Made by a program: the position numbers and the translations under genes
Shown: positions 9,542-57,104 of the stretch, one piece after another
How the letters are laid out: every line of letters starts with the position of its first letter
How positions within the stretch are numbered: the first letter of the stretch is position 1
Notes under the pieces: model-generated
What the model was told of the DNA's origin: nothing
Databases searched by the model: none
What the model saw: the letters and a program-made list of their open reading frames with translations, nothing else
Virus record (IMG/VR): IMGVR_UViG_3300024999_000030
Location: 124,001-188,000 of that record
Strand: one strand, 5' to 3'
Length of the DNA: 64,000 bases

Positions 9542-9768
9542 AAAACTATGGCATGTATATATCCTGTCCCGCTTGTAAAGGTGACAGATTTTGGATTGCT
9601 TCTATTACAGATTTAAGTAAATGTAGCAAAGACCTTGATTTTATTAATAAAATAGCTTATATTGTAGATGGAACTTGTGAACAGTGTAATCATTTAGTTG
9701 CAGATATAAATGAACTAGAGGCTCTGTTAATCGGTTCCGAAGGAACGGGGAATGATAGAAAAGATTGA
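9538..9768 (+). CDS. Small Zn-finger protein
   Basis: CPAC...CEQC. Confidence 0.55.
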   Translation: MKNYGMYISCPACKGDRFWIASITDLSKCSKDLDFINKIAYIVDGTCEQCNHLVADINELEALLIGSEGTGNDRKD

Positions 9769-10384
9769 TAAATTAATTTTTATAGACACCGAAACTACAG
9801 GTCTTAGTCCAACAACACATGAAATTATTGAAATTGGTATAGTGCAGGTGGACCCAATTACGCTTAACGATTTTGATCAAGCGGAATACAAAGTCTTACC
9901 TCAGAGCATTGCCACGGCTGATGAGCGAGCCTTAGCCATGAATCATTATTCGTTTATGTCTTGGCGAGGAGCAAAACCCTTTCAAGATGAGGTTGGCCCA
10001 TATCTTTCTAAATTAAGCACTCCTAAATCTATTATATGTGGACATAATATAAAATTTGATATAGCTTTTTTAGAATCAATGTACAGTAAATATTCGCCAG
10101 AGTTATCTTTTTCATATGGTGGAACTCTTGATACTCAGTCTCTGGCCAAACACTTAGCCGTTGCTACTCCATCGTATAGATTAGGAGTTTTGTGTCAGAA
10201 ATTTGGTGTTGAAATTGAAACCAGTAAACAACACAGTGCATTATATGATATTTTAGCTAATGTGGCGCTTTTTAAATCTATGTTTCGTAATTATAGTATT
10301 CCATTGTCCGAGGCCATCGTGTTGGGGCCCTGCGGAAAGAAAAATCAAAAGAAAATCATTACAGCCACAAAAACAGTGAGCTAA
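9752..10384 (+). CDS. DEDDh 3'-5' exonuclease (DnaQ/epsilon-like)
   Basis: IFIDTETTGL, GHNIKFD, HSALYD. Confidence 0.9.
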   Translation: MIEKIDKLIFIDTETTGLSPTTHEIIEIGIVQVDPITLNDFDQAEYKVLPQSIATADERALAMNHYSFMSWRGAKPFQDEVGPYLSKLSTPKSIICGHNIKFDIAFLESMYSKYSPELSFSYGGTLDTQSLAKHLAVATPSYRLGVLCQKFGVEIETSKQHSALYDILANVALFKSMFRNYSIPLSEAIVLGPCGKKNQKKIITATKTVS

Positions 10385-10398
10385 GAAAGGAAGACATC

Positions 10399-13300
10399 GT
10401 GGGATATAATAGTAAGGATATTAAGGTCCTTAAGGGCCTGGATCCTGTTCGTCAACGCCCTGGTATGTATATTGGAAACACGGATGACGAGACAGGAACT
10501 CATCAAACTGCATTTGAAATTATAGACAACGCAATAGACGAGGCCATGAACGGCTATGCCGATTTGGTCGCTGTCACCGTTCATGCGGATGGAAGTCTTT
10601 CTGTGCGCGATAATGGTCGGGGCGTGCCTGTGCAGATGCATCCTACCGAGAAAAAATATGGTGTTGATCTTGTTTTTACAGTACTTCATGCTGGCGGAAA
10701 ATTTGACGAACAGGCATATAAAACATCTGGTGGTCTTCACGGCGTGGGAGCCTCAGTGGTCAACGCTCTTTCTGAATGGCTTAAAGTTGAAGTAAAAAGA
10801 GATGGCAGGAAATATTTTAGAGAATATGCTAATGGTAATCCTATTGGCGAACTTCAGGATCTCGGTCCAAGTAAGAAAACCGGCACTATCGTTACATTTA
10901 AACCGAGCGTTAAGGTGTTTAGAAAGCCGGAATTTAGCTTTGAAATATTAAAAAATAGATTAGAAGAATTAGGCTTTCTCAATGAAGGCGTTGCTATTAA
11001 ATTAACCGATGAGCGCACCAATGAGGAATTTGAAGTTGGTCATAATGACGGTTTGAAACGTTTTGTGGAGAGAATTGAACCGAAGGCTCAAATTCTCACT
11101 CCTCTTATCCAAGTGTCTAGCGCCAAAGGCGAAAAAGTACGAGTGCGTTGTGCATTGCAGTGGAAGTTAGATTTTGATGGAGATAGGCTTCTCGCTTTTA
11201 CTAATAATATTCGTAATGGTGACGGCGGTACTCATGTAGTTGGTTTTAAAAATGTTTTAACACGATGTCTCACTAAAGCCCTAACGGGCAAAAAGGGAGC
11301 TAGCCTCGTTACTGGGGATGATGTTCGTGAGGGCCTTGTTGCTATTATTGATGTTAAAATGAGTGACCCTAAGTTTTCGTCTCAGGTTAAGTCAAAACTC
11401 GTTTCCGAAGAAGCTCGTACGGCATTGGAGAATATGTCTGGGGCCTTTGAAGATTATTTTGAAAAAAATCCAGCTCATTTAAATCGCGTAATGCAAAATG
11501 CCGTGAGAGCTGCGGAATCTAGGGAGGCAGCTCGTAAAGCAAGAGATTTATCTCGAAAGAAAAACGCAATGGATATCGGAGTTCTTCCTGGTAAATTAGC
11601 GGATTGTCAAAGTAAAGATCCAGCCATTAATGAATTATTCTTAGTTGAAGGAGATTCAGCCGGTGGAACAAGTAGACAGGGTAGGGATAGAAAATTTCAA
11701 GCGATTCTTCCATTGCGTGGTAAGGTAATCAACGCAGAAAAAGCGACCCTACATAAACTATTGGCAAATGAAGAAATTAAATCACTCATTGCTGCAATTG
11801 GAACTGGTATTGGAGAAAATTTCGATATTGAGCGTTTAAGATATCATAAGATTTGTATTATGACTGACGCCGATAGTGTTACTGGAGACACCCCCTTAAT
11901 GGTTTTTAATAAGGAAACCAAAGAAATGAAACTATATCGCACAGACGATTTTATTGATAATGTTTGTACGGATATTTCTAAATATCAGATAGTGGCATGT
12001 GATTTGAAACACAAGTCTTTTGGTTTTAGAAACTTACAACAAGTGTATAAGCATCCAAGTAAAAAGCAATTATTTAGAATTACAGATGACAATGGACATC
12101 ATGTAGATGTAACATCAGATCATAGTGTTTTTGTGTATCGGAAAGAAACAAGGTCATTTGAAGCCGTATCTACAGTGCGTCTTTCTGTCGAGGACCAACT
12201 CGTTTCATCTAGAGCTATACCAGATATTACAACAACAGAAATGAAAATTAATCCATATTTGCTTGGTTTATTTATTGGTCATGGGCAAGTAGATAGTCAA
12301 GGTCATTTCAAATTACTGCGTAGTACGAGATTTAAACAACGGGCTGTGGATTTCAACAGCTTACCAGCAGTAAAAATTACCACTACAGATAGAGTAGCTC
12401 AAACAGAAACGTTGGAATTTACCAATAAACGTATTTCAACAATGATATCCAGTTTTAATATTACTAAATCTGAATTACCAAATTGTTTGTATACGGCACC
12501 AACGGCCCAAAAATTAGCTTTTCTGCGTGGTTTATTGGAGTCATGCGCAGCGGTGATGGTTCACCAGGGTATATCTATTTGTGCTGAAGATTCATTGGCT
12601 ACTGGGTTGATCTATCTACTGAGACAATTTGGAGTGTCTCCAGCTATTCTTAGAGGTGGGGCCAAGGCATTAATCAATATTAAAATTAAAGATATGGCAT
12701 TCATTGCTGGGGCCTGGGATCATCATAAAGCAGTTAAAGATTTTGGTGATCTTGTTGCTCCATCCAAAGAATATGAATTGGTAAAAATTAAATCAATTGT
12801 GGAGCTTCCTCAACAACCATATGTTTACGATTTGTCTGTGGATGTGGATCAGAATTTTGTGGCAGGAACGGGAGCAACTCTCTTACACAACACCGATGGG
12901 GCCCACATTAAAACGCTATTGTTGACTTTCTTTTATCGACATATGCCAGAGTTAGTGAAAAAGGGACATATTTATATCGCTCAGCCGCCACTATATCGTT
13001 GTGTTATTCGTGGTAAGGTGCATTACATTTTGAACGATGGGGAATTAAGATTGTTTAAGGTAAAAGAAAAATATGGATTACTTAGAACTTATAAAAAGGG
13101 TAAAAAATATGCTTTTCCACAAGAACAAATTTTTGATATGCCAAAGGGAACTCTTTTATATTCAGATAAACTACTATTTGATGTTCCCATAGAAGATATT
13201 ATGAAACTAGTTACAGAACCAAGAGAAGATCTTAAGCTTCAGCGGTTCAAAGGGTTGGGAGAGATGGCAGCAGAACAATTAGCTGAAACCACTCTAAACC

Positions 13301-13443
13301 CATCTAGCAGAAGAATGTTACAAATTAAAATAGAATCAACAGAAGCTGCAGATAACATGATTACAACTTTGATGGGTGATGACGCAGAGGCTCGTCGCAC
13401 CTTTATTATGGAAAATTGCCAATTCGCTACTCCAGACGTGTGA
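10399..13443 (+). CDS. gyrB: DNA gyrase subunit B interrupted by an intein
   Basis: RPGMYIG, EIIDNAIDE, GGLHGVG, VEGDSAGG, PLRGK, IMTDAD|intein|TDGAHI, QRFKGLGEM. Confidence 0.95.
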   Translation: MGYNSKDIKVLKGLDPVRQRPGMYIGNTDDETGTHQTAFEIIDNAIDEAMNGYADLVAVTVHADGSLSVRDNGRGVPVQMHPTEKKYGVDLVFTVLHAGGKFDEQAYKTSGGLHGVGASVVNALSEWLKVEVKRDGRKYFREYANGNPIGELQDLGPSKKTGTIVTFKPSVKVFRKPEFSFEILKNRLEELGFLNEGVAIKLTDERTNEEFEVGHNDGLKRFVERIEPKAQILTPLIQVSSAKGEKVRVRCALQWKLDFDGDRLLAFTNNIRNGDGGTHVVGFKNVLTRCLTKALTGKKGASLVTGDDVREGLVAIIDVKMSDPKFSSQVKSKLVSEEARTALENMSGAFEDYFEKNPAHLNRVMQNAVRAAESREAARKARDLSRKKNAMDIGVLPGKLADCQSKDPAINELFLVEGDSAGGTSRQGRDRKFQAILPLRGKVINAEKATLHKLLANEEIKSLIAAIGTGIGENFDIERLRYHKICIMTDADSVTGDTPLMVFNKETKEMKLYRTDDFIDNVCTDISKYQIVACDLKHKSFGFRNLQQVYKHPSKKQLFRITDDNGHHVDVTSDHSVFVYRKETRSFEAVSTVRLSVEDQLVSSRAIPDITTTEMKINPYLLGLFIGHGQVDSQGHFKLLRSTRFKQRAVDFNSLPAVKITTTDRVAQTETLEFTNKRISTMISSFNITKSELPNCLYTAPTAQKLAFLRGLLESCAAVMVHQGISICAEDSLATGLIYLLRQFGVSPAILRGGAKALINIKIKDMAFIAGAWDHHKAVKDFGDLVAPSKEYELVKIKSIVELPQQPYVYDLSVDVDQNFVAGTGATLLHNTDGAHIKTLLLTFFYRHMPELVKKGHIYIAQPPLYRCVIRGKVHYILNDGELRLFKVKEKYGLLRTYKKGKKYAFPQEQIFDMPKGTLLYSDKLLFDVPIEDIMKLVTEPREDLKLQRFKGLGEMAAEQLAETTLNPSSRRMLQIKIESTEAADNMITTLMGDDAEARRTFIMENCQFATPDV
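11875..12891 (+). mobile_element. 339-aa intein (Ser1...His-Asn, +1 Thr) with degenerate LAGLIDADG endonuclease
   Basis: Block A SVTGDTP; block B VTSDHSVF; block F VYDLSV; block G LLHN/T; HEN-like blocks YLLGLFIGHG and FLRGLLESCA. Confidence 0.92.
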
Positions 13444-42495: not shown

Positions 42496-43903
42496 GGCAT
42501 AATCTAAAATCTTGTCCTATGCCCGACTGACACAAGATATAATTGATATATGTTCCAATTCCATGTGATATTGATTTTCTCGGGTCTAATAACTAATTCG
42601 AGCCAATCATGAAAAGATATATCATAAAAGGATATTGTAGAGTTATTCATTCTTTTGCCTCTTTAATAGAAGTTGACAAGATACCATTTAAATATATGCC
42701 AAGTTCTAAAAATACTGACTCCATTTTTATGTGTAGTATTCTTCATATTAATCAACTATATCATACCACATATGCATCCCAAGTCCATTTAATATTAAGA
42801 CTATCCCGTTTATTATGTTTCATAATTATATCACACCATTCTTTTATATGTTCTCATGTTTTCTAATTGATATTTTATACCATTGAAACATATTCCAATT
42901 CCATTCAATATTTCTATTAGAGGGTGCTGTTAAAATTACTTTAAGCCATTCATTGAAAGAAGGGATTTTCATATCAAGTTTTCTCCAATTATATAAGACT
43001 TATAGGTTCTATATAACGACCAAGTCCATTTTATAGGAATAATACCCCTATAAGAATCAACTCCGTTTACATTAAGCCATGTCTTATATGTCATCTTCTG
43101 AAATATAGACACCAGTACCTCCACAAACGGCACAATCCTCATTTAAGTAATCTTTACCAGTACCAGTGCAATTATCGCATTCTTTGGTAGTCCAGGTTCG
43201 CGTATCTGCACTAGTTTTCCAGTAATAATAAAAGCCCCATGTATCAGCTATTGCAGTGGCTATGATAAGAGTACCAATCCTTTATGTCTATATTGTCGCC
43301 ATACATTTATAATATAGTAATTTTGTTTATCCATATAATATGATGAATAAGGTATGCCAATCATAAGTAATAATACACACAATAAAAGGAAATATTCTAA
43401 ACCATTCATCCAGCCCATTGCCGCTCCATTAAATCCATTAAAAATGAATCCATGTATATAGGCTCCACATTCTACGAATAGAGATAACTTGATATTTAGG
43501 AAGCCTATCAGTACCAAAATTCAATTGATACCACTTAGTTCTCTTATACTGTTCTAAATTTATCTTAGCCTTCATATTACCTCTCATAGATAAAGCCATA
43601 CATAAAAAGCCCATACCTTACGAATGGATGTTTTTTCTGTAGGTTTATTATCACATAGCCATAGATTCAATAATTGTTTAAAGGTAACCATGATATATCT
43701 CCTTATCCAAAAATTCTAAGCCATATGTATATACGCCATCTTCTATGAATAGACATAAATTTATTTCCTAAAATAGGACACTCCATCTGTATGAAATCTT
43801 TGCCACATATACCATCCATATGTATCCCATGTCCAAGAGATAGAAATAGCTTTATTGCAAAGGGCGAATACACATACTAAGGAATTCTTTAAAAGTTAGC
43901 ATT

Positions 43904-44374
43904 CTATCTCTTCATCTCTAAAAGAGCGGCTAGTTCCAAGAAAGTAAGGATACTGGTTTCATTCATATTAGTATTCATCATAATATCACAATCTATAAGG
44001 ATATAAGTTCCCCGAGAAGCATCAGTATATAGATTAGTATTAGGAATGGCATCTTTTAGTATTCTAGTTTTACTCCATGGGCACTCAGAACAATTTAATA
44101 TATTATTATCCGTAAGTATACAAGTCGGATTCTTTATATCATTATGCCGAGTAATACTTCCACGTGCAGCTCTCCATTTATGATCTGGATTAACTATTTC
44201 TTCTGCTTGTTTAAAGTGTTTAATATACTGTCTATTGATGTTATTAAGAGAATTACACCACTCTTCCCCTTTGTTTTCTTCAGTTACACATGATTCAAAG
44301 TCGCGTATGTATGAATGTATACGGTAGAGGGTTGAGTCGATAATGTAAGATTTATGTGTTGACTGTTCGCTCAT
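43904..44374 (-). CDS. Divergent Cys4-family paralog
   Basis: C...CSECPW...C...ILTFLELAALLE. Confidence 0.55.
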   Translation of the reverse strand: MSEQSTHKSYIIDSTLYRIHSYIRDFESCVTEENKGEEWCNSLNNINRQYIKHFKQAEEIVNPDHKWRAARGSITRHNDIKNPTCILTDNNILNCSECPWSKTRILKDAIPNTNLYTDASRGTYILIDCDIMMNTNMNETSILTFLELAALLEMKR

Positions 44375-44389
44375 TATGGCCTCACTATC

Positions 44390-44418
44390 AATATAATTTG
44401 AACGTTGTTAATTGTCAA
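44390..44418 (-). promoter_or_regulatory. Promoter TTGACA-N17-TATATT
   Basis: Exact spacing; heads the long leftward transcription unit. Confidence 0.72.
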
Positions 44419-44574
44419 GTAAGAGTCGATGATAATTAAATAAGGATAATAATGGGGCCGCCGTTAAGAGGATACTGTATAGGATTGATATGGGTATTGT
44501 ATGGATATTGGGTATTTAAACAGGAGGTTATAAAGAGATCGGTGTAATAATGTAAAGGCTTATGAATACTGAAT

Positions 44575-44890
44575 AAGTGAGTCATTTATGACACAGTATA
44601 ATAATAAGATAAGTGAAATAATATAGAGAGGAGTTAGGAGAGAGTTAGGAGAGAGATACTGAGTTGTGTCTACAAAAATGACACATGTGACTTAAATGAC
44701 ACACTGGCGTATAATAGATAAGTGAAATTTATAATGAAATGACATTAAGATAACTATTAGATACTGGTAAAAGTGAGTCATTTATGACACACTTTACTAA
44801 TAGTATGAGCGGTTAAGTGCGATAATATGAGATAATATGAAGAATATATACTGATAATCAACATGTGACAAAAATGACTCACTTTCACTT
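44575..44890. repeat. Iteron-like cluster: aagtgagtcatttatgacac x2 (44575-44594, 44771-44790) plus an inverted variant (~44860-44889)
   Basis: Identical 20-mers with internal palindrome gtcat-tt-atgac, in an AT-rich non-coding divergent region. Confidence 0.75.
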
Positions 44891-45088
44891 AAGTTGTGAA
44901 AATACTACCCCCCAGACAATAAGAGTCTGAGGTAATATCAGTATCTCCCCGCCCTAAGTCTAAGCCAAGCATCAAGCGACTTACACTTGTAAAGAGTTTG
45001 GCCAGTATCAAAGTATAGCGTGACGCTGTGTCATGCTAGATACTGGCGCGAGTGTAAGAGACTTAGATACTGGCCAAAGGAGTTAAAG

Positions 45089-45481
45089 ATGGCTAACATC
45101 TTGAGCATGAAGGGCTTGGGCGTCAAGGTTACCGTCAAGGTAATCAAGAAGCACAAGTTCGTGGACGGTTCTCCCGAGCTGTCCCACAAGGGCGAGTACA
45201 CTCTCACCCTGTCGGCGGGGTCCAAGTCCGTCTCTACTAAGTGCGTGGGGACGGGCGAGTTGTTCGCCAAGTGCTACGCCATGATGAGCGTGCACTTCCC
45301 CAAGAGCTATGCTAAGTTCCAGGCCATCAGCAAGGTGGAGAAGGCCGCGAACAAGGCGAAGGCGAAGGCGAACCACAAGGCGAAGAAGGCGGCGGCCAGC
45401 GGCGTGGACTTGAAGAGCCTCGCCGCACTCCTCAACCGGGCGAAGAAGGGCAACGGTAAGATGCTGGCCCTGTTCCTCTAA
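45089..45481 (+). CDS. Highly basic Lys/Ala-rich protein, paralog 1
   Basis: RBS aaggag; GC-rich codons; aligns by eye with 56703-57104. Confidence 0.8.
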   Translation: MANILSMKGLGVKVTVKVIKKHKFVDGSPELSHKGEYTLTLSAGSKSVSTKCVGTGELFAKCYAMMSVHFPKSYAKFQAISKVEKAANKAKAKANHKAKKAAASGVDLKSLAALLNRAKKGNGKMLALFL

Positions 45482-45659
45482 GCCAGTATCTCATCATCTT
45501 TCCAGTATCTTATTATAGATACTGACACAATCTAAAGTAACTCATGGGTGGGTTAGTATAATACTAACCCTCTCTGGTCAGTATTCTCCCACCTGCGCGT
45601 GGTACTGACTGCTGATAGATACTGGTCTATCACAACGGGAGAAGATAAGGAGGAGTAAG

Positions 45660-45830
45660 ATGGGACAAGCTAGACAAAGGGGAACCCGGGAACAGCGTGT
45701 CGAACAAGCCCAAGGCCGCAAAGTCGGGGTGCCGGTTAACCTCACGGCACAGCTCCAGCGTAACTTCAGTAACAAAAGGAGTTTCCGTGAGTCGTTGTTC
45801 ACTCGGCTCACTCGTCTCTTTCGCTCTTAA
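45660..45830 (+). CDS. 56-aa basic protein, not in the ORF track
   Basis: RBS aaggaggag; MGQARQRGTREQR... Confidence 0.65.
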   Translation: MGQARQRGTREQRVEQAQGRKVGVPVNLTAQLQRNFSNKRSFRESLFTRLTRLFRS

Positions 45831-46027
45831 GGGGCAGCATCTCAATCATCTGCCTTGACCTCAGTACGTTGAAGTGCTCTGAGGCTAAGTAGGACTAGGA
45901 CTCTCTTATAGTAGAGCCAGCCTACCCCCAAATATAGCCAGTATCCAGAGCTGGTCGATCAGTATCTTAATTACTTAGATATTGGTCGGCCATAATGTGG
46001 GTACTGTATATAGTGGTGTGTGTTTGA

Positions 46028-46199
46028 ACCATACCACATATAGACAGAAAGATGGGTTTTGAGAAAAATGAGATCTAATACCTATAGTTAGTTAGTATCT
46101 CATTGTATAATACTGGCGCTATAATTAAGTATGTCTATATGTAGTGGTGTTAGTAAAGACCATACCACATATAGACAGAAAGATGGGTTTTGAGAAAAA
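46028..46199. repeat. 41-bp direct repeat (46028-46068, 46159-46199) with a partial third copy at ~46223
   Basis: accataccacatatagacagaaagatgggttttgagaaaaa seen twice. Confidence 0.9.
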
Positions 46200-46317
46200 A
46201 CAGTTGTGGTGTGTTATAAAGACACTACCACATATAGTAGTGTAACATAACAGCGCCAGTAATAAAGATACTAGCTAAACCATATGATACTGGATAAACC
46301 AACGGAGGGAAACCACA

Positions 46318-49300
46318 ATGGCTTATCATAAGTCTCAACGCCGCAATCTCAAACCTACAACCATCAGACAGTATCATTATGCTGTAAGCCGGCTTCTCAA
46401 TGCTTGCCCTCCCAATCTTCTCATACAAGTTATGAAAATGATTCGGGCAGGAGCAAAGACTTACCCAGTGTCTAAGATTCAATCTTTCATGGCCGGTAGT
46501 GGATTCTACATGTATTCACGAGAGATTAACAAAGCCATCAACGCTATGCAATGGGGATTATGCCCGCCTCAATATCGCATCTCCAAGAATAATCGCTGGT
46601 ATTTGGATACATTCCCTCAAGAGCCTGGACCGGTTGCTTATGCTGCCATGGAAACGGTCAGTATCAATCATCCAATTACTGCCCCCACACTTCAACCTGC
46701 CATGAACATTGTGTAAATAAAGATACTGGTCTGTAATTCTACCAGTATCTTACCTTCGCCGCCTAGTTACTTTGCATAGTGCAGGGAAACTTCGGCGCGA
46801 TCATAGGCTAATACAAGGAGGACAATATGGATTACGGGTAGCTAAGCTCAAACCTTAATTCAGTGTCTAGAGATGGCGGTCAGTATCGTCCAGTACAAAT
46901 GATTATAAACACTGGGATACTGGCCGTCACACTGTAGATACTGGACAAAACTTTCAATAGGAGGAGGCTACAATGGCCTACACACTATATAATCCACCGA
47001 CTAAGTGGTGGAAAAGGCAACACAGTATCACAATAACTATCTGGCCTAAGTGGTTAGCTCAGAAGCTTTGCAATCACTCTGCACCTAAACCTTCATGGAT
47101 TACTTCAAACACTTGCTACTCTTGCCCGGACTGTTACACTCTTATGATTCCTCCAGGAGCAGTCACCACGAAGGAATAGGGAGCGAGGTGAACGATGAAC
47201 GAGCAACCCAATAGTTCCATCTCAATCGTCCGTTACTCCAGAGATGGCTTCGTGGCTAAACGGCAGTCCAAACATATGTATAATGTTTGGCATGAGCTGT
47301 TTAAGTTTAATAGCCATGACATGCCAGAACATCTTCGTGGTGTCAGCGTAGAAGCACACCATAAGATCGTCCCTTTCTATCGTGAACACCTCGCTGATTT
47401 TAACTGGGGCATCTGGGTATTCATAGAGGGACACGATAACATGATGTCTCTCAATCATCTGCACGGTCAAGATAGGATGGGGCTTAAGCGTTGGACTGCT
47501 GTAATTCCCAGTAACACAGAGGTTTACGGTGTGGGGTGGGATGTCATTGTCTCTATTAGTGATTTCATTCCACAGATGTTCGGCTGCTTCATACCCAAAC
47601 GAAACATTCCTCTCATCACGGATATCAAGTGTGACGATGAATGTGATGTGGAGTTAGAGCTAGAGAGGTATGACTGGGAGCGTGAAGAAGAGAATCGCAT
47701 GCTCCGTTGTGGGTATTAGAAAGGAGGTGTCTTAAGTTGCCAGTCTTCATCGTTCAACAACTCGAAGGCGTCCACTGGTTTGATTCCGGTGATCATGGGG
47801 CCTGTCTGACGCGAATCCTTTCCAGCCAGAGAGAGGGGCTGGAGTTTGCGAGGGATGTTACCAGACGAACACAATTCGAAACCCGAGTAGTGGAGACAGA
47901 CAAAAACCGAATTGTTTACAACGTCTGGTCTCCGCACGCTCCATAACAATCCGTTCTTCACAGAGTACTCCTGTTAAAGGGAGTACTCAATCCCGTCAAT
48001 GTATACTAGCTGGTGGGACGGGGTAAGAGCACAATATATAGTAGTGCTCAGGCTAGTATGCCACAACATATAGGAGAACACATGAACATCAGTCGGCGTA
48101 AGAGGGGTTACATAAATCAGAGAGGAGGATAACAATGAATAGGGCTGATGTCCTCTTGATACTGGACGAAAAGTTTGCCAAGAAGGTGACGGATGAATAC
48201 AAGAAACGCACTGGATACAGTAATGTAATCGGTAGCGTTTCTAGCAATATGAAAGTCTTTATCCCCATCATTAAAGATATTCTTGATGATGGGCTTCGTG
48301 TACAAGAAGAAAACGAAAGAGAGGTGCGACATGATAAAAGTTGAACCGATGGAACCGCTGGACACAGAAAACTACGCCGTGCCCTTGAATCCTTTTCATC
48401 AAGACATATACAGTATGGGGACGACGCTGGGGACAAACGTGACGGTGATGTACGGAAATCATACTCACACTCATCAACCTTACATCATCGTTGTTAACCT
48501 GGATACTGGCGAACGAATCAAGATCGCTTTCTGAAAGGGAGGTGTGTCATGAACGAAAAGGAAAAGAACAGGATGCGACGATTATTGGAAATGGCTTATT
48601 TGTTTGCATGGGGTCCAGATGGTACGGCTGACCGCAGAGATGAATGGTGGGAACTTAAAGCTTTACTTCCCAACGTAGGAACGATGTGTTATGGTGGTAA
48701 TGGTAAATTCCGATGGGACGAATGAGCCAAATAGGTTCAGTTCTTTTTCATAAGGAGGCGTGCCATGGAACCGATCTTTGTTAACAATTGGGGCGAAATA
48801 CGAGGCGGTATCTCAGTGGATGAAGTCTTGAAGGGGGATGGTAAGCTAGCTGGCTTTACTGTCTCTGGCAAGAATCAAGATGGTAAGGAGTTCTGCATTG
48901 ACTTCTTCGTTCATGTTGGTGCCAAAAACATCACCATCACTTGCAGCTAAGGGAGGAGGAACTACATGGAATGGAAAGTCGTTGATACTGGCGATGAAAT
49001 CACCATCGTTCCTGAAACCCGCAATCTCCCCGGCAAAGTTCTTTTCGTCGGAACCTCAGTGGATTGCGATGAATATCTATATGAACTGAGCAACGACGAA
49101 TAACCTAACCCCATAAGGAGGCTCAACATGGAATGCGGATATCTAATTGCGTGGGTCGGTCCTTGTAAAAGCCAACCATCGGACGACAGTTCGTGCCGAT
49201 GTGACAAACACAAGGACAAAGTCTGTGCATCTTGTGGTGCTCCAGCCACTCAGGAATGCGATACGACGGGACAGTTCGTTTGTGGTGCTCCTCTCTGCAA

Positions 49301-50004
49301 CGATTGCGAGCACACCATCGCAGAAGACGGAACCAATGGTGGGGTTGGTTTCGTTCAACTCTCTCCCCTCCCACCGGGCTACAAGCCACACTGCAAGAAA
49401 ACGGAACAGAAATTCACCCCCTGGTTCATGAGGCCACTTTCGGAGAGCTAAGGAGGCTCGACATGCCACTAAAACCTGGCGATCGTTTACCCCGTGCTAA
49501 GGTAGATATCATGGACCTTAGCGAAGTGATGGATGAGGATATGAGGGGTAAGTTGGACACCCTTCGCACCCTCACTCCTCCTAAGCCCAACCTGTTTCAA
49601 CTGGAAGGAGGACCGGCGGATGGATAGAAAAGATCGAATCATCCAGCGCCAGAACAATGAAATACTGCTAATGGAGCTTCGTCTAGAGGAACTGGAAAGG
49701 ACCCTCGGTGAAGCGGTTAATCTCATCCAAGAAATCCACACAGAGATGATGACCGAGCTTCATACCTGTGCTCTGTTCGATGATAAGGTCTGGGTCATCG
49801 ATCAAGAATTGGCAATGGCCCACGCTGCCTTTGAGGAGGATATGGCAAAGGGCCTTGAGACACTTCAAGACGATGAAAGGTCAGATGGCGTACTGGATTC
49901 ATGAAGCAGAGCAGGGAGAGGCATCTGGATATCTTGGTCCCGATAAGAGTGAAGAGTTTCTCAGTAGGATCCTTAACAAGCTGGATGTGCCTCCAGAGGA
50001 TTAA
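46318..50004 (+). other. Cluster of ~14 short hypothetical ORFs with strong SD sites, including Cys-rich Zn-finger 49128-49451
   Basis: aggagg-type RBS before nearly every start. Confidence 0.6.
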
Positions 50005-50054
50005 ACCAGTATCTCTATAGTCTTAAAGATACTGGCGAAGTAATAGATACTGAG

Positions 50055-50920
50055 CATGGATGACACGTGACTCAGTTCTATAGGTAAGCCTAGCATATAG
50101 CATGTAGCGTCTCCTATAAGAGGCACGTGACTATATGTTGTCGGATGGTGGCTAGGCATGTCGGGTAGCAGGCGGGTGGCTAATCCGATACTTCAGTTTC
50201 AATCATCGCACGTCACCTACTAAATAAGTGGTACGGCGGTAGTTGATTAGAGCCCATTTTAATCGCGTGACGATGATTCAGGGTAGGTCCAGTGACTCCT
50301 GCAATACACTTACCTCTGACGGGCTGATAACCCCTCATGCGAGTAATGTGACGGGAGACCATAGCACATGAATGCCCTTATCCCTATAGGGGACGGAACG
50401 TATGTGACTATGAGAATCGTCCAGAGTAAGAGCCTGGATGATAGGAGAGACGCGTAAGCGACTCTAAAGACTGGACGAATTAGACGGCAGGTGGGTGGCC
50501 AGTCTAATGGGTTTGCAAAACTATTCTACTGCATGGAGGGACGGCAAAAGCCCTTCCCAGTTTCCGTTAAGCGGTGCTGACCGTGACGGTGGAATAGTTT
50601 AAAGGGTAGGCTTAGAAATATACCACATGGAGAAGACACCCCAATCGAGTGGAGTCAGTCATATAGATGGCCTGTGATGGTATAGGGGCTTATGGAGAGT
50701 AAGCCAGGCTAAGCGGTTAGGGTGAGCAGGTGAGTGGCTTCCTAACACTTAAGTTAAACTGGTGTCTATCATATAGGTAGCGTCCGGTAGAGTCCGGTGT
50801 GTATGATGGGCCAGGAAAGGTAAGCGAGGAGATGGCATCGTAGATGTGGGAGTTTTCTTCCTATGGTGCAGATTAGGCGGTCCTCGCGTGGCGTCAGCAG
50901 GTGGGTGGCAGGCGCTCTCG
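50055..50920 (+). ncRNA. Candidate large structured non-coding RNA (~870 nt)
   Basis: No ORF >=60 aa in the track; many nested stems with G-U pairs; four GC-AGGYGRGTG-GC stem-loops. Confidence 0.72.
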
Positions 50921-50943
50921 GAATAATATGAAAGGAGGCGGCT

Positions 50944-51294
50944 ATGACTTCAAGAGAAAATCTTCAAAGAATTAATGAAGCAATCAAAGCCGCTAAACAT
51001 TTAATTAAACACCCCCATAGTAAATCGGCATGGGGGAGTTTAGATTATAACACTCTGCCAATAGGCAATTATTCATCAAAAGGATTTACTTGTCCAATAA
51101 GTTGTGATAATTGTCCACTGGCATTGGGAATAACTCCGTTGAATCTTCCTGAGTTTATTTGTGAGGGTAATGCCCATGACATTATAATGGAAAAACAAAT
51201 CATGGGAGAGGTTATATTACTTCTCATTCAATTTGTGGCCACTATGGAAGTAGTCCAGGAGGATATTAAAAGGGGCCAAGGAGGTACAACATGA
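50944..51294 (+). CDS. Cys4-family paralog
   Basis: CPISCDNCPL...FIC...GEVILLLIQFVA. Confidence 0.8.
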   Translation: MTSRENLQRINEAIKAAKHLIKHPHSKSAWGSLDYNTLPIGNYSSKGFTCPISCDNCPLALGITPLNLPEFICEGNAHDIIMEKQIMGEVILLLIQFVATMEVVQEDIKRGQGGTT

Positions 51295-51593
51295 GAAAAT
51301 TAAATAATAAAGAAAGACGAGCACAGATAGAAGCAGTAAAACAATTATTAGATGACGTTAAAGATATTTATCTTTGGAGATAATTACATTCTGTTACTGG
51401 ATTCTTTAATTCAATAGATTTCTGTCCGGACCTTCCTGGTCAAATTTTAAGGTGTCTGCATTGTCCCTTAAGATTGAACTCAGCAACTCATTTATGTCGA
51501 TATAGACATCAGAATTATAAGGAAGTCATAATATCGGATGGTGAAATAACCATTAGGCTTCTGGAGTTTCTAGCCTATATACAAATAACCTAA
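51291..51593 (+). pseudogene. Cys4-family paralog with in-frame TAA at 51381-51383
   Basis: ...IYLWR*LHSVTG...CPDLPGQILRCLHCPLR...HLCRY...DGEITIRLLEFLAYIQ. Confidence 0.8.
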
Positions 51594-51609
51594 CGAAAGG
51601 AGGCTTCAG

Positions 51610-52023
51610 GTGAGAAAATGTAATGGATGTAAGCAGACCAAAGATGAATATTACATGCTTAAACCTGAAGTCTGGATACAGGCATGTATGAAGCCCGTTA
51701 AAAACATCCCAGTAATATCTGTCCTACGCATGCTTTGTGTATCATGTGTAGAAAAGAGACTGGGAAGGGAACTTAACTGGCGGGACTTTGCTCTTTGCCG
51801 ACTTAACTTGGACCCATCTGAACCGAGAACGGCTATACTTCAAGATCGAATGAGTGGTATAACCAATCGCCTTCCACAGTGGTTCTTCAATAGATACGGT
51901 GAAGATCAATGGGATGTGTCGGCCTTAGCTTATGGATGGCCACTGAGAGGAGGATGCAATGAAAAACACACCGATAGAAAAAGCAAAGCGGGCGGCGGAG
52001 TATCTAATCAAGCATCCTCATAG
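51610..52023 (+). CDS. Hypothetical phage protein
   Basis: C..C, YML...VW, LCVSCVEKRLGREL...DF. Confidence 0.6.
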   Translation: MRKCNGCKQTKDEYYMLKPEVWIQACMKPVKNIPVISVLRMLCVSCVEKRLGRELNWRDFALCRLNLDPSEPRTAILQDRMSGITNRLPQWFFNRYGEDQWDVSALAYGWPLRGGCNEKHTDRKSKAGGGVSNQASS

Positions 52024-53528
52024 TAGAATCGCTTGGGCTATGTTAAGCGATAATACTTCTCCTTCGTGGGGCAATAAACTAATTCGGTGTCCATTTGATT
52101 GTTATAACTGCCCATTAAGAACTGGCGCAAATGAATTAGGTCTTCAGACATATATATGTGGTAAGTCTGATTTTGAATCCAAGAGTGGTAATTTATTCGG
52201 AGAGGTTATATTGTACCTCATCCAATTTGTTGCTTTTGTGGAAGCGTTTCAAGGGGCAAAGCCATGATAATCACATTTAAAAGTGTCATCAACATGCCTG
52301 ATTAGATTCATTGCCTTTGCTCAGGTGGAAGTGGAGGATTCCCATGAAAGTCCCAGATAAAGAGGATAGGCAATTACAACTCACGACGATTTACGACCTG
52401 ATAAATAACTTGGATGATCCCAAGTATTGGAGAAGACTTTGGAACGTTACTGGGGGGCACTATGAGGAGCCAAAAGCAGAATGGAAAGATTTTTGTCCAT
52501 CTATTGATGGTTCGCTCCGGTGCTATAATTGCCCCCTTCGAGTGTTGGGTGAACATTATCAAGTCAACTATCTCTGTCGCCATAGTGGTTCTAACAAACC
52601 TGATCCAGCTAATGGAGAAGTCCTTCGTAGGTTATTGGAGTTTCTAGCCTACTCACAATTATAAGGAGGGTCCAAATGAAATGAGAGGATATGAAATAAG
52701 GACCCAGGAACAAATGGAACATCAAATAAAAGTAGCCCAAGCATTACTTAACGACTTAAGTAATGTGAATCTATGGAAGGAACTGTCTCGTATAACTGGA
52801 CTACAACCAGTCGTAGTAAGTAAAACTAGATTAACTAAGACTGATTACTGTCCAGGTTTATCCGTCTCAACTCCCTCACGGTGTAAAATCTGTCCTCTTT
52901 GTCTCCCTAGAGCCCAAGTACCTGGACAAACTTCAAAATGGGATTACTATCTCTGCCGAAGGTATATGTCTCATGAAAAATTGTGTCCAGAGATAGAAGA
53001 TGGGGAAGCGACTCGTAGGCTATTGGAATTCATAGCCTTCATACAAATACAACCCGACTCATAGGAGGTGACGATGAAAATCTCTCGCGTTCCATCACAG
53101 TTCGCCCCTGGTCGCTACAACGATGAATTCGTTTATAGGGAGGTGATCATGAAGCATGGTGTTACATGACCAACTCAAATAGTACAACCCCCATCAAAAT
53201 CATCAAAGAAATCCCTGAAGAACAAATCAAAGCAGCCCAGTATCTAATCAATCACATTGATGATCCTGAAGGCTGGAAACGCTTGCAGGAAGTAACTGGT
53301 GATACTGGGATCTTTGAATCCACAATCGATCACTGTGGCGACAATGCATACTCTGGAAGGCTGCCACAGATCACATGTTCAGCGTGTCCCCTCAGGGTAG
53401 AAAGTAGCACATATCTCTGCCGATATAGTCACCCAAATTATCCTCATGTCAATATGGAGGACAGTGCGATAATTCTGAAACTGATAGAGTTTATCGCATA
53501 TGTTCAAACAGTTTTTCCTAAGGCATGA
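51959..53528 (+). CDS. Four tandem Cys4-family paralogs (51959-52267, 52344-52664, 52681-53064, 53166-53528)
   Basis: C..CxxCPL..Y(L/I)C..GE...L(L/I)(E/Q)F(I/L/V)A in each. Confidence 0.8.
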
Positions 53529-53846
53529 GATATACTTGGAAGGAATGCAGAGAGTTAATTAGCTGCTGCACTTAAAGTAGTAGCTAAGCCACGATCCAAG
53601 AAAGCCTGGAAGGAACTGGGTAAAGTTACTGGTGTGAATTATCGCACACCCGACAATAGTCTAGTCGGGAAAGAAGTCGATTTTTGTAAGAAGGCTTGTT
53701 CCAAATGTCCCTTGTATGTAAAGAGAGCGGTATACATTTGCCGCAAGGACATTTGGCCAGAAATGTTGATAGACGTTAGTGAGGGCGAAATCCTTCGTCA
53801 CTTGCTAGAGTTTATCGCTCACATCCAAATACAGGAGGAGCAGGAC
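53525..53846 (+). pseudogene. Cys4-family paralog with a +1 frameshift near 53560 and no stop before ORF 53847
   Basis: ATGA overlap start MRYTWKECRELI; other frame continues AAALKVVAKPRSKKAWKELGKVTG...CSKCPL..YIC..EGEILRHLLEFIA. Confidence 0.65.
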
Positions 53847-53984
53847 ATGGCAAACGCATCTCAACTCCGTCGGGCCAAAGCGAACAAACTCACCGCCACC
53901 CAGGAACGCAAGCAGTCTCTCAAGGCTAATCGTGTCTTCGGACAGACGAGGACGACGATGCCAAGGAAGTCCAAGAGCCGTTAG
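53847..53984 (+). CDS. 45-aa basic peptide with its own RBS
   Basis: ggaggag then ATG; MANASQLRRAKANK. Confidence 0.55.
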   Translation: MANASQLRRAKANKLTATQERKQSLKANRVFGQTRTTMPRKSKSR

Positions 53985-54108
53985 TCTCCGTTAGTATTCA
54001 GAGCCAGTGGGCCAGTATCTTATAATGTAACAATCTCAACAATGAGATACTGGCTCATTGTAATGTGGATACTAACTCTGGGGCGAAAGTTTAAATGGGA
54101 GGTGGACA

Positions 54109-54768
54109 ATGGAAAAACTGATATTGCCCCTGATGAAGCCCGACCCGAAACAAATAGCAAAGGAAATGAACATAATGAACATGAAGACGGTCGGAAGCAA
54201 TTATCTTGAGAATCTCTTTCGGCCCCCAGGATATGCAAAGCTTATCATCACTGCCACCATTCAATTCATGAATACTCAATTTCCCAAGGATACTGGGCTG
54301 ATTGTTACTGGACTTAGCGGAAGTTTACTGGGATATGCCATCATGCTCTTGGGTGGTATTCCAGTAGCCTTTGTCCGTAAGGATGATGAACATTCTCATG
54401 GTGAAAGGATTGAAGGTATCCTCGCAAAGAAAGTCGTGTTCTTTGACGACTTCATTGCTAGGGGGACGACCTTTTTAAATATTCAAACGGCCATCCAGAA
54501 ACACAATCACATATTATCCAGCAAGGTTAAATTTGCTGGCTCTTTCTTCTGGTCATATTTCGATGTTATGTGTAAGGAAGAAGTTGCCAAGAACGGTCCC
54601 GTGTTTCGACTTCAGGTTGCCCGTTCTCCTGGGTCAAGTTATATCCAACGCTGGAACGATCATGACTCTAGGTGGAAGCTTCTTGAAAAATACAAGCTAG
54701 GATCCTATGACGATCCTTCTTGGAAACAACCTCCCAAGGAAATCAACTTATCTGGCGATGCTGTGTAA
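54109..54768 (+). CDS. Type I phosphoribosyltransferase (orotate PRTase-like)
   Basis: VAFVRK..HSHG..IEG and PRPP-binding VVFFDDFIARGTT. Confidence 0.75.
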   Translation: MEKLILPLMKPDPKQIAKEMNIMNMKTVGSNYLENLFRPPGYAKLIITATIQFMNTQFPKDTGLIVTGLSGSLLGYAIMLLGGIPVAFVRKDDEHSHGERIEGILAKKVVFFDDFIARGTTFLNIQTAIQKHNHILSSKVKFAGSFFWSYFDVMCKEEVAKNGPVFRLQVARSPGSSYIQRWNDHDSRWKLLEKYKLGSYDDPSWKQPPKEINLSGDAV

Positions 54769-55048
54769 TTAAACTACAACCAAGGAGGTGGGAATGAACA
54801 TAAGAAAACTGGAAGTCATCCGGCAGGTATATCGTCGGGCATTCCTGGATCAGTCTCATACCTTTAAATTGAAAGACCGGCTCCAACGCATCTCTCAATT
54901 GAACGGCAAGAATGCTGAAGGAACAACAGTCTTCTTCGTTCGGGCATTTAAGACTGGGTGTGGTGGGGGTGTTTACTACGAGATTATCAAGGAAACGGAG
55001 AACAAAGACATCCCCCATATAAACTGTCTTTCCTGAAGGGATAAGACG

Positions 55049-55258
55049 ATGGTACTGGCAGACTTCAAACCTGGCGACCGGGTTAAGGTCGTGTCGGAAG
55101 AGAACTGGGGCAACCGCAAGAACCTCGTGAATAAGACGGGGGTGGTTGTTAAGACCATGAACGTCCATAAGGATGGCGTGGTGATGGTTAACATGGACGA
55201 CAGAAGGTGGAGACAGCAGACCTTCTATCCGTCCCAACTCAGTATCGTCCAGGACTAG
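55049..55258 (+). CDS. Single KOW/SH3-like beta-barrel protein
   Basis: FKPGDRVKV....TGVVV....VMVNMD. Confidence 0.55.
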   Translation: MVLADFKPGDRVKVVSEENWGNRKNLVNKTGVVVKTMNVHKDGVVMVNMDDRRWRQQTFYPSQLSIVQD

Positions 55259-55748
55259 GAAGAGTTAACAGGTCGTGGTCAAACTCCCAGTGATGGTTTG
55301 GGCATAAGATGTGAGTGTTTTTCGGCCCATTAATTTCCCCTAGAGTCATAGGCACTGGACACTTTGATATGGCTATGATGTGAGCGACTTCAACATGCTT
55401 ACTGTAGCCACACACCTGACATCCCTTGCTTAATCTCTCTCGATTCCAGCGCCTGGCTAATCCCCTAATGCCCGAATACCTATTAGCGGGTAAACCTTTG
55501 CTTGTCTTGTGGCCATTGAGGTGTTCTTCAAGAGTAGATGACTTCAATTTTGCGGCAAGTTTATCTATCTCTTTCCTACATGGCAGGCAAAATGTTCTCC
55601 TGCTGGTACATGGTCCTCCACATTTAGCACATTTATGCTCTGGCTTGCGTTTAGGGTGGCGTAGATTGTTGTAGGTTGCGGCACAAGATTTAGAACAGAA
55701 CTTGTCATTGTCATGGGACTTTAAACACTGGGGACATTGCTTCTGCAT
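55239..55748 (-). CDS. HNH endonuclease with N-terminal Zn fingers
   Basis: FCSKSC; CQVCG...EVAHI...N...LCPNHHWEFD; RBS aaggag. Confidence 0.85.
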   Translation of the reverse strand: MQKQCPQCLKSHDNDKFCSKSCAATYNNLRHPKRKPEHKCAKCGGPCTSRRTFCLPCRKEIDKLAAKLKSSTLEEHLNGHKTSKGLPANRYSGIRGLARRWNRERLSKGCQVCGYSKHVEVAHIIAISKCPVPMTLGEINGPKNTHILCPNHHWEFDHDLLTLPSPGRY

Positions 55749-55809
55749 GTTAATCTCCTTTGAACACACTATATACTGTTTTATTAATATAGCGTGTTCA
55801 AATCTTTTT

Positions 55810-55885
55810 GGGTCGTTAGCTTAGCATTGAAAGCCATCGGCTCATAACCGATAGATCACAGGTGAGAATCCTGTACGACCCACCA
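55810..55885 (+). tRNA. tRNA with CAT anticodon (elongator Met or Ile2), atypical elbow
   Basis: Acceptor gggtcgt/acgaccc + ACCA; anticodon arm atcgg-ctcataa-ccgat; T arm acagg-tgagaat-cctgt. Confidence 0.85.
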
Positions 55886-55886
55886 T

Positions 55887-55961
55887 GGGCCCGTAACTCA
55901 ATGGTAGAGTATCGCCCTTTTAAGGCGAGAGTTGAGGGTTCGAGTCCCTCCGGGCCCACCA
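55887..55961 (+). tRNA. tRNA-Lys(TTT)
   Basis: Acceptor gggcccg/cgggccc + ACCA; tcgcc-cttttaa-ggcga; TTCGAGT. Confidence 0.95.
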
Positions 55962-55999
55962 CTTATCTTATACAGGCGAACGCCAGGAAGGAGGTAACC

Positions 56000-56380
56000 G
56001 TGCCGTGCGATTGCGGTAATTGCCATTTCGGATTCAACTGTTCCAAAGAGTGGCAGACTCTCCACCCCGGAACGACCTGGTACGCCTGCGAGTTCTGCGG
56101 ACTCTATCAGGCTTCAGCTCCCATGTGTAACAAGTGCGAGCTGCAGGAGGAAGAGACCAAGTCCGGTATGAAGAGGTACGAGTTCCAGCGGCGCTCCCCA
56201 TTCTCTGGTAAGATTCACACCATGACCATCCAGATGACGGAGCAGCAGTTCGCGGAACTCTCCCAGCCCAACGGTCGTCACATCCAGGACATCCTCCCCC
56301 ATTGCACCCCCGATGAGAGGGAGTTCATCATGACCGGTATCACTCCCGAGGAATGGGAGCAGACCTTCGGGAAGAAGTAG
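56000..56380 (+). CDS. Cys-rich N-terminus plus conserved phage domain (IQ...P...EREF..TG.T..EW)
   Basis: RBS ggaggt before GTG 56000. Confidence 0.65.
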   Translation: MPCDCGNCHFGFNCSKEWQTLHPGTTWYACEFCGLYQASAPMCNKCELQEEETKSGMKRYEFQRRSPFSGKIHTMTIQMTEQQFAELSQPNGRHIQDILPHCTPDEREFIMTGITPEEWEQTFGKK

Positions 56381-56387
56381 TTACTTT

Positions 56388-56473
56388 GCGGCTGTGGTGG
56401 AATGGCATACACTACAGACTTAAAATCTGTCGGTCGTAAGACCTTGCGGGTTCGAATCCCGCCAGCCGCACCA
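56388..56473 (+). tRNA. tRNA-Leu(TAA), long variable arm
   Basis: Acceptor gcggctg/cagccgc + ACCA; acaga-cttaaaa-tctgt; TTCGAAT. Confidence 0.95.
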
Positions 56474-56702
56474 GCCCTTCCCAGTATCTCTTTCGTCCGA
56501 ACCGATAGGATACTGTCTCTGGCATTTCCCAAGGTGGAGATGCTGTATAATCGTAAGACCCACGGTAATGTATAGAGAGGATAAGCCTACTCTATCTATT
56601 GTGGGGACGGAGTAGTACCGCATTCCAGTATTAAAATGAGTCCAGGATACTGGTCTTGCGGAAACTTAAACTGGACCAAAGATCATAGGGGTTTTACAAC
56701 AA

Positions 56703-57104
56703 ATGAATATTCTCAACCAGAAAGGCCTCGGCGTGAAGTTCGTGGTTAAATGCACCAGGAAGGCAGTCTTCATCGAGGGTTCGCCCGAGAAGTCTTCCAA
56801 GGGGCATTACAACCTCACCGTCAGCGCCGGCGCCAAGAAGTTCTCCACGACCTGCATTGGTTCGGGAGAGCTGTTCGCTAAGGCATGGGCGATGTTGGCT
56901 GCCCACTTCCCCGCCGCCTATAAGAAGGCGACGGCCATCTCCAAGCAGCAGCGCGATGAAAACCGCGCCAAGGCAAAGACCACCCGGAAGGCGAAGAAGT
57001 CCGCTGCCTCCGGCGCCGATGTCAAGACGCTGCTTCAGGCTCTTGCTCGTCAGGGTAAGGGCAAGGGTAAGGGCAACGGTAAGCTTGTTGCCCTCTTCCT
57101 GTAG
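56703..57104 (+). CDS. Highly basic Lys/Ala-rich protein, paralog 2
   Basis: Shares NIL..KGLGVK, GSPE.S.KG, GELFAK, ASG.D.K.L, GNGK..ALFL with 45089-45481. Confidence 0.8.
   Translation: MNILNQKGLGVKFVVKCTRKAVFIEGSPEKSSKGHYNLTVSAGAKKFSTTCIGSGELFAKAWAMLAAHFPAAYKKATAISKQQRDENRAKAKTTRKAKKSAASGADVKTLLQALARQGKGKGKGNGKLVALFL

Follow-up and report, generated by a model that had tools for sequence, protein, structure and literature searches.

The gene-free stretch at positions 50046-50916 (+ strand) of the 64,000-nt window encodes a highly structured, previously undescribed RNA of about 870 nt, which is composed of four tandem copies of one structural unit. The window, meaning the whole stretch of DNA analysed here, is part of IMGVR_UViG_3300024999_000030, a 332,730-bp contig of an uncultivated groundwater phage. 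Only one related phage was found to carry the same RNA, and this new RNA class rests on two sequences and no expression data. We place the probability that it is a genuine + strand modular RNA at about 0.9. Its function is inferred only. We favor a multivalent binding scaffold or sponge, probably co-transcribed with the downstream genes for Cys4 proteins, at about 0.4-0.45 for the mechanism and 0.45 for the statement as a whole.

Genomic setting and evidence for a folded RNA

The same phage genome was assembled repeatedly from Rifle aquifer groundwater metagenomes (PRJNA268031), and the region studied here is identical in six other assemblies. The window encodes a GroEL-type chaperonin, an AAA ATPase, a GyrB-like topoisomerase with an intein, a thymidylate synthase, and three tRNAs. 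From 44 to 55 kb nearly all genes are small, located on the + strand and without known relatives. Between the stop codon at 50002-50004 and the ATG at 50944, the longest ORFs are 52 aa (- strand) and 42 aa (+ strand). Gene callers used on four public assemblies of the same phage also left this stretch empty. The G + C content is 0.50, higher than that of the flanks (0.36-0.45), and the cumulative GC skew has no turning point here.

An earlier note, made from the sequence alone, proposed that this stretch is a + strand structured RNA of about 870 nt, either a new member of the large phage RNAs such as GOLLD and ROOL or a new class. All stems listed in that note are present, namely GCCTAGC 50088/GCTAGGC 50151 enclosing ATATAG/CTATAT, AATCATCG 50201/CGATGATT 50271, CATAGCACAT/ATGTGACTATG (50360-50412), ATCGTCCAG/CTGGATGAT (50416-50442), AAACTATTC 50518/GAATAGTTT 50592, ATACCA/TGGTAT (50620/50678), and GCGAGGA 50824/TCCTCGC 50881 enclosing GCATCGTAG/CTATGGTGC. 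The + strand folds to a minimum free energy of -349.2 kcal/mol against -303 +/- 8 for dinucleotide shuffles (z = -5.7), whereas the - strand reaches only -263.8 kcal/mol (z = -2.85). In addition, GTGAC occurs 7 times against 0.5 expected.

Scanning against Rfam 15 (4227 models) gave no match to this stretch at gathering thresholds, and only three noise hits (E 2.7-9) were obtained with permissive filters. Membership in GOLLD or ROOL is excluded, because neither covariance model matches, and no match was found to OLE, raiA, HEARO, tmRNA, RNase P, or group I and group II introns. ARAGORN likewise finds no tRNA or tmRNA in 50005-50943. The proposal of a new class in the earlier note is supported, whereas the tandem repetition of one unit was not foreseen in it. 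The RNA also probably sits in the 5' part of the transcript of the downstream genes, so that an independent noncoding RNA is not established.

A homologous RNA in a related phage

A profile of the six paralogous Cys-rich proteins encoded just downstream found one foreign relative among 5.8 billion proteins. Its contig (L003, from JGI 3300005259; 172,952 bp) carries a 770-nt gene-free stretch (9231-10000) in the same position, with the order of a 95-aa protein, a hairpin, the gap, and then the Cys-protein paralogues. The two phages are syntenic but diverged, as the upstream proteins are 29% identical and the downstream ones 51%. Nevertheless, the two gene-free stretches align colinearly and share perfect blocks of 13-18 nt. 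Nucleotide comparison (blastn) of 49900-51000 found similarity inside the gene-free stretch only, not in the short coding stretches at either end. The L003 copy also folds better on the + strand (-278.5 against -235.2 kcal/mol), and gives only one noise hit in Rfam (E 5.5). Neither phage keeps an ORF or a reading frame across the region.

No further homologue of the RNA was found in the collections searched. Comparison of the region with 50,697 phage records by blastn gave no match. Scans of viral contigs with RNA motifs (B-loop pairs at three spacings, a 17-mer, a 15-mer, linker plus B, and A plus linker), together with a protein-based scan, returned only the source contig plus chance hits. 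A metagenome scan, in which L003 itself did not turn up, returned three copies of the same phage and 23 other matches with no similarity to the RNA, which we take as chance. A further scan, which is not exhaustive, returned G + C-rich chance hits or a 16-nt minisatellite. Moreover, profile searches of the 5.8 billion proteins with the downstream, the upstream and a nearby conserved protein found only the window phage, L003, and one 2.3-kb fragment, indicating that the clade is rare in current data. Full-text literature searches found no description of such an RNA. A DNA-conserved stretch between the tRNAs (55961-56388), initially suspected to be a second noncoding RNA, is a conserved protein gene.

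Architecture of the repeated unit

We folded the domains of each RNA separately and compared them, which shows that both RNAs are tandem arrays of one unit, with four copies in the window and three in L003. Each unit starts with an A module, a stem of 5-14 bp continued by the helix 5'-CAYG(N)/(N)CGUG-3' with a bulged A on the 3' strand, often closing a three-way junction. A single-stranded purine linker AGG(G)UARG follows, directly after which starts a long-range helix P. In units I-III helix P encloses a second A module, whereas in unit IV it encloses hairpins Q and R instead. After 1-4 nt the unit ends in a B hairpin of about 10 bp with a bulged or mismatched A, closed by G-C and C-G pairs, which displays the conserved 9-nt loop AGGNGGGUG.

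Unit I (50049-50190, 142 nt) is present in the window phage only. It contains the A hairpin Ia (50049-50076), the linker AGGUAAG (50082-88), helix P(I) (50088-94/50151-57) enclosing the A hairpin Ib (50095-50136), and the B1 hairpin (50159-50190) with the loop AGGCGGGUG (50170-78). The unit is bounded by the direct repeats GATACTG (50046) and GATACTT (50186). Unit II (50201-50508) begins with the A module IIa (50201-50278), a three-way junction with the stem AAUCAUCG/CGAUGAUU followed by CACGU/GCGUG, a bulged A at 50270, and two inner hairpins. Its counterpart at L003 9297-9361 has two compensatory pairs in the stem. The linker AGGGUAG (50280-50286) is part of a 16-nt block identical in both phages. 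Helix P(II) (50287-50476) is formed by GUCCAGU 50287-93 and ACUGGAC 50470-76, and encloses the A module IIb (50296-50357), the window-only A hairpin IIc (50360-50412), hairpin HpY (50416-50442), and hairpin HpX (50446-50465). The B2 hairpin (50479-50508) carries the loop AGGUGGGUG (50489-97) and a bulged A at 50501.

Unit III (50518-50746) starts with the A module IIIa (50518-50600), a three-way junction with a 14-bp stem, CAUGG/CCGUG, and a bulged A, which shows 4 compensatory pairs against L003 9553-9625. The linker AGGGUAG (50603-50609) is followed by helix P(III) (50610-50714), formed by GCUUAG 50610-15 and CUAAGC 50709-14, which encloses the A module IIIb (50619-50684) and a hairpin at 50687-50705. 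The B3 hairpin (50716-50746) has the loop AGGUGAGUG (50728-36). Unit IV (50759-50916) begins with a degenerate A-type hairpin IVa (50759-50814), the L003 counterpart of which (9778-9879) is canonical apart from a bulged U. The linker AGGUAAG (50818-24) leads into helix P(IV), GCGAGGA 50824-30/UCCUCGC 50881-87, which encloses helix Q (50835-43/50861-69) and hairpin R (50848-52/50857-61). Relative to L003 (GUUGGCC/GGCCGAC), P(IV) has 5 of 7 pairs changed on both sides. The B4 hairpin (50890-50916), with the loop AGGUGGGUG (50899-50907) and 4 compensatory pairs, is the last conserved structure.

Two of the perfectly conserved blocks pair with each other to form P(II), and two others form P(III). 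When window 50287-50478 and L003 9373-9510 are folded on their own, both minimum-energy structures close with P(II) and contain the same series of elements, with one extra A hairpin in the window. Independent folds of the P(III) domains also give the same inner order in both phages.

Covariation and modularity

Across 24 homologous helix segments, 121 base pairs were matched by hand, among which 78 are unchanged, 14 changed on one side, 29 changed on both sides with pairing kept, and none is broken. The arms were trimmed to the paired parts, so the zero is partly by construction, although the count of double changes is not affected. Sliding the 3' partners by 1-3 nt leaves 1-3 double changes and 80-92 broken pairs. 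The pairs include 25 G-U cells, and 21 of the 121 pairs would break on the opposite strand because they are G-U, in line with a + strand RNA. Without curation, RNAalifold on the raw MAFFT alignment of the whole RNA gives -116.0 kcal/mol against -33.8 +/- 4.8 for column shuffles, about 17 sd beyond them, and finds 38 compensatory pairs against a mean of 19 and a maximum of 29 in the shuffles. For unit III the energies are -46.9 against -11.7 +/- 3.5. The reverse complement scores worse in each case. RNAalifold recovers unaided the whole unit III architecture (IIIa, P(III), IIIb, a hairpin, and B3), as well as B4 and hairpin R.

The seven B hairpins of the two RNAs all fold alike. In one common register 80% of cells pair against 60% in shuffles, and the covariation score is 0.54 against 0.21, with 0 of 500 shuffles as high. 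A covariance model of the B hairpin, run with filters off over both strands of the window and L003 (84 kb), finds these seven and nothing else up to E = 1. A descriptor of the A module matches 6 times in the 939 nt, against 21 times in the remaining ~126 kb of both strands (about 0.16 expected). In L003 it matches 4 times in 770 nt, against 4 elsewhere in ~39 kb. Moreover, hairpins are exchanged between units, as window B2 and L003 B3 are 97% identical although they sit in different units.

Ends and expression signals

The hairpin at 50006-50035, CCAGUAUCU-N12-AGAUACUGG, lies directly after the stop codon of the upstream ORF and is conserved in L003 at 9243-9273. The earlier note described it as an inverted octamer pair right after which the RNA starts. 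It is a 9-bp hairpin and is not specific to this RNA. AGATACTGG and its complement occur 60 times in the window against 12.7 expected, almost all between 43.9 and 57 kb, and 42 times in L003 against 4.5 expected. The usual arrangement is a hairpin CCAGTATCT-N-AGATACTGG just after a stop codon, then a second GATACTG 18-27 nt further on, which lies 15-45 nt before the next ribosome-binding site (compare 45039/45066 and 46916/46937, and 6514/6541 and 9265/9283 in L003). We infer that this is the gene-boundary signal of the phage, a termination or processing hairpin plus a promoter or 5'-end element.

The RNA locus has the canonical GATACTG pair (50028-34 and 50046-52), which is the likely start of the transcription or processing unit, but the next start codon is 890 nt away (712 nt in L003). 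After B4 there is neither such a signal nor an intrinsic terminator before the Shine-Dalgarno (SD) sequence AGGAGG (50933-38) and the ATG (50944) of the first of six paralogous Cys4 protein genes. The RNA is therefore probably made as the 5' part of the transcript that also encodes the Cys4 proteins.

Possible function

The RNA repeats the same exposed 9-nt loop 3-4 times and the same bulged-A helix 6-8 times. The simplest reading is a multivalent platform, in which each motif binds one copy of the same partner, most simply a protein, either phage-encoded or a host factor that is titrated. Unit number could therefore change (3 versus 4) without destroying function, and unit I is absent from L003 and flanked by direct repeats in the window. 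Against this reading, unit IV lacks a second A module. The conserved neighborhood makes the private family of Cys4 proteins (six copies here, at least four in L003) the first candidates and suggests a testable ribonucleoprotein. However, nothing identifies them as RNA-binding, since they have no Pfam or PHROG match, the AF2 model (pLDDT 70) shows a predicted helical bundle with a Cys loop, and no PDB fold matches with E < 1. The mechanism is inferred only. Large, intricately folded RNAs without a known function are rare, and each new class has so far revealed unexpected biology. The novelty here is at the level of RNA class and architecture, whereas the kind of function may yet turn out to be a familiar one, such as a sponge, a scaffold or a leader. 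The repeat design offers seven near-identical loops and about ten near-identical helix motifs, and single units of 142-158 nt are small enough for structure determination.

Other readings appear less likely, although the first three below stay open. The structure might be the untranslated leader of the Cys4-protein operon, controlling its translation or stability by binding the operon's own products, as in ribosomal-protein or T4 translational operators, or by masking the ribosome-binding site. In both phages it has the same strand as the gene and lies immediately adjacent to it, and the gene-start signal lies upstream of the RNA. In addition, the 3' arm of hairpin R (CUUCCU 50857-62) is complementary to the SD AGGAGG, with a matching change in L003 (CUCCCU with AGGGGG). 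However, this pairs a purine run with a pyrimidine run and could be fortuitous, and B4 ends 16 nt before the SD and does not include it. At 0.77-0.87 kb with 3-4 repeated units, the RNA is far larger than any described bacterial or phage leader, and the gain or loss of whole units is odd for a switch. Still less likely is an RNA-only architecture as in ROOL, GOLLD, and OLE, in which kissing loops and A-minor contacts by the bulged A's fold the units into a closed pseudo-symmetric particle or a homo-oligomer. The RNA lies 4.9 kb from a tRNA cluster, as is typical for ROOL and GOLLD, and bulged A's and conserved loops are the elements used for bridges in those cages (10.1101/2024.12.08.627333). 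The motif CACYY, complementary to GGGUG of the B loop, is enriched, occurs four times per RNA and is positionally conserved in modules IIb and IIIb, so that the repeated motifs could make intramolecular or intermolecular RNA-RNA contacts. It does not covary cleanly, however, as window B3 GAGUG against CACCC gives an A.C mismatch. The differing unit numbers and the range of unit sizes (142-308 nt) also fit poorly with a closed symmetric body.

A transcript cut into 3-4 stable RNAs of 140-310 nt, resembling a tRNA cluster or a CRISPR or ToxI-type repeat array, is also unlikely. The units are self-contained, since no helix spans two units in the curated model, unit number varies between the two phages, and GAUAC(U/A)G precedes every unit in L003 and units I and II in the window. 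However, some GAUACUG copies are simply the 5' strand of A-module stems (L003 9380 and 9650), and window units III and IV lack the motif. The RNA is not a ToxI-like array of near-identical short (~36 nt) repeats next to an endoribonuclease toxin gene, because the repeat search finds only 9-22-nt motif families with 171-319-nt spacing and the neighboring proteins have no Pfam or PHROG nuclease match. An anti-SD decoy is not convincing either, as loop position 4 varies among U, C, and A. Only the A version (L003) gives GGAGG, whereas the window versions place U or C opposite U of the CCUCC target. A DNA-level element, such as a replication origin or regulatory region with iterons, or a decayed gene is the least likely. 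The region is ORF-free and carries repeated short motifs (GATACTG, GTGAC, and the 13-nt B core), but the double substitutions preserve pairing rather than sequence, the pairing is strand-specific, and the skew and the lack of a conserved frame argue against it. More speculatively, and unlikely on present evidence, the RNA may define a new architectural principle for large natural RNAs, with 3-4 tandem copies of a single ~150-300-nt fold acting as an intramolecular counterpart of the ROOL/GOLLD homo-oligomers, or as a high-valency decoy by which a huge phage captures a host machine or defense factor during infection.

Comparison with known RNAs

GOLLD (RF01998) is a large (>800 nt), intricately folded RNA of unknown function, encoded by phages and prophages, often near tRNA genes, and assembles into 14-mers (10.1101/2024.12.08.627333). 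Similarly, a tRNA Met-Lys-Leu cluster (55810-56473) lies 4.9 kb downstream of the RNA described here, although this context is not sufficient for membership. GOLLD has a universally conserved 3' domain and a variable 5' domain, not tandem copies of one unit. ROOL (RF03087) is also a large phage or prophage RNA near tRNA islands with no known protein partner. It is ~580 nt with intertwined 5' and 3' regions and pseudoknots and forms an octameric cage, whereas the RNA here is beads on a string with a variable number of beads.

The protein-sponge RNAs of the CsrB/RsmZ type provide the working analogy for the proposed mechanism, as one transcript carries many similar hairpins exposing the same short purine motif in the loop, with a copy number that varies between species. 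Those RNAs are simple hairpin strings of 100-350 nt with GGA loops, while the units here are 142-308 nt with junctions and long-range helices. The window loops are AGGCGGGUG, AGGUGGGUG (twice), and AGGUGAGUG, and GGA is present in only 2 of 7 loops, both in L003 (AGGAGGGUG), so that the RNA is not a CsrB-type GGA sponge. No CsrA-type partner is implied. OLE (RF01071) is a ~600-nt ornate RNA that works as a ribonucleoprotein with proteins encoded next to it, analogous to the conserved pairing of this RNA with the Cys4 gene family. It shares no sequence or structure similarity with the present RNA, and it is bacterial (Bacillota), not phage-borne, and not built of repeats.

Repeated motifs and possible exchange between the units

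The 9-mer AGATACTGG and its complement are strongly over-represented in both phages, occurring 60 times against 12.7 expected in the window and 42 times against 4.5 expected in the related phage contig L003. In the window they are found almost entirely in the region 43900-57000 (for example, at 45483-45525, 46721-46750, 50006-50052, and 54012-54053), whereas in L003 they occur throughout. The copies form hairpins just after stop codons and are also present as single or double copies 15-45 nt before start codons, and together they probably represent the phage's own gene-boundary, promoter or processing signal. Within the structured RNA, unit I, which is absent from L003, is bounded by the direct repeats GATACTG and GATACTT (50046-50192), consistent with the gain or loss of a whole unit by recombination between these motifs. 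In addition, the B2 hairpin of the window RNA (50478-50509) is 97% identical over 30 nt to the B3 hairpin of L003 (9731-9762), although the flanking conserved blocks place the two hairpins in different units. This observation suggests exchange (gene conversion) between the repeated units.

Neighboring genes

A private family of ~105-127-aa proteins is encoded at 50944-53984 in the window and at 10001-12266 in L003, with six tandem paralogues in the window and at least four in L003. These proteins contain four invariant Cys (CP...C..CPL...C) and a conserved C-terminal helix (GE..L.LLEFIA). They have no Pfam or PHROG match, and the AF2 model (pLDDT 70) is a predicted helical bundle with no PDB match. 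Moreover, a short frame between the first two of these Cys4 genes (51384-51590) is 48% identical over 62 aa to the L003 paralogue at 11880-12263, and is probably a truncated or decayed seventh family member.

A tRNA Met-Lys-Leu cluster has a 123-aa Cys-rich ORF wedged between tRNA-Lys and tRNA-Leu (window 55810-56473 and 56009-56380; L003 14021-14681). This stretch is about 93% identical at the DNA level between the two phages and is among the most conserved stretches of the shared region. It is a protein gene, not a second ncRNA. An HNH endonuclease gene (55239-55769, - strand) lies next to it. Elsewhere in the window, the GyrB-type topoisomerase gene (10399-13443) encodes 1014 aa and carries an intein (Pfam Intein_splicing, residues 527-831), which is located after the Toprim domain.
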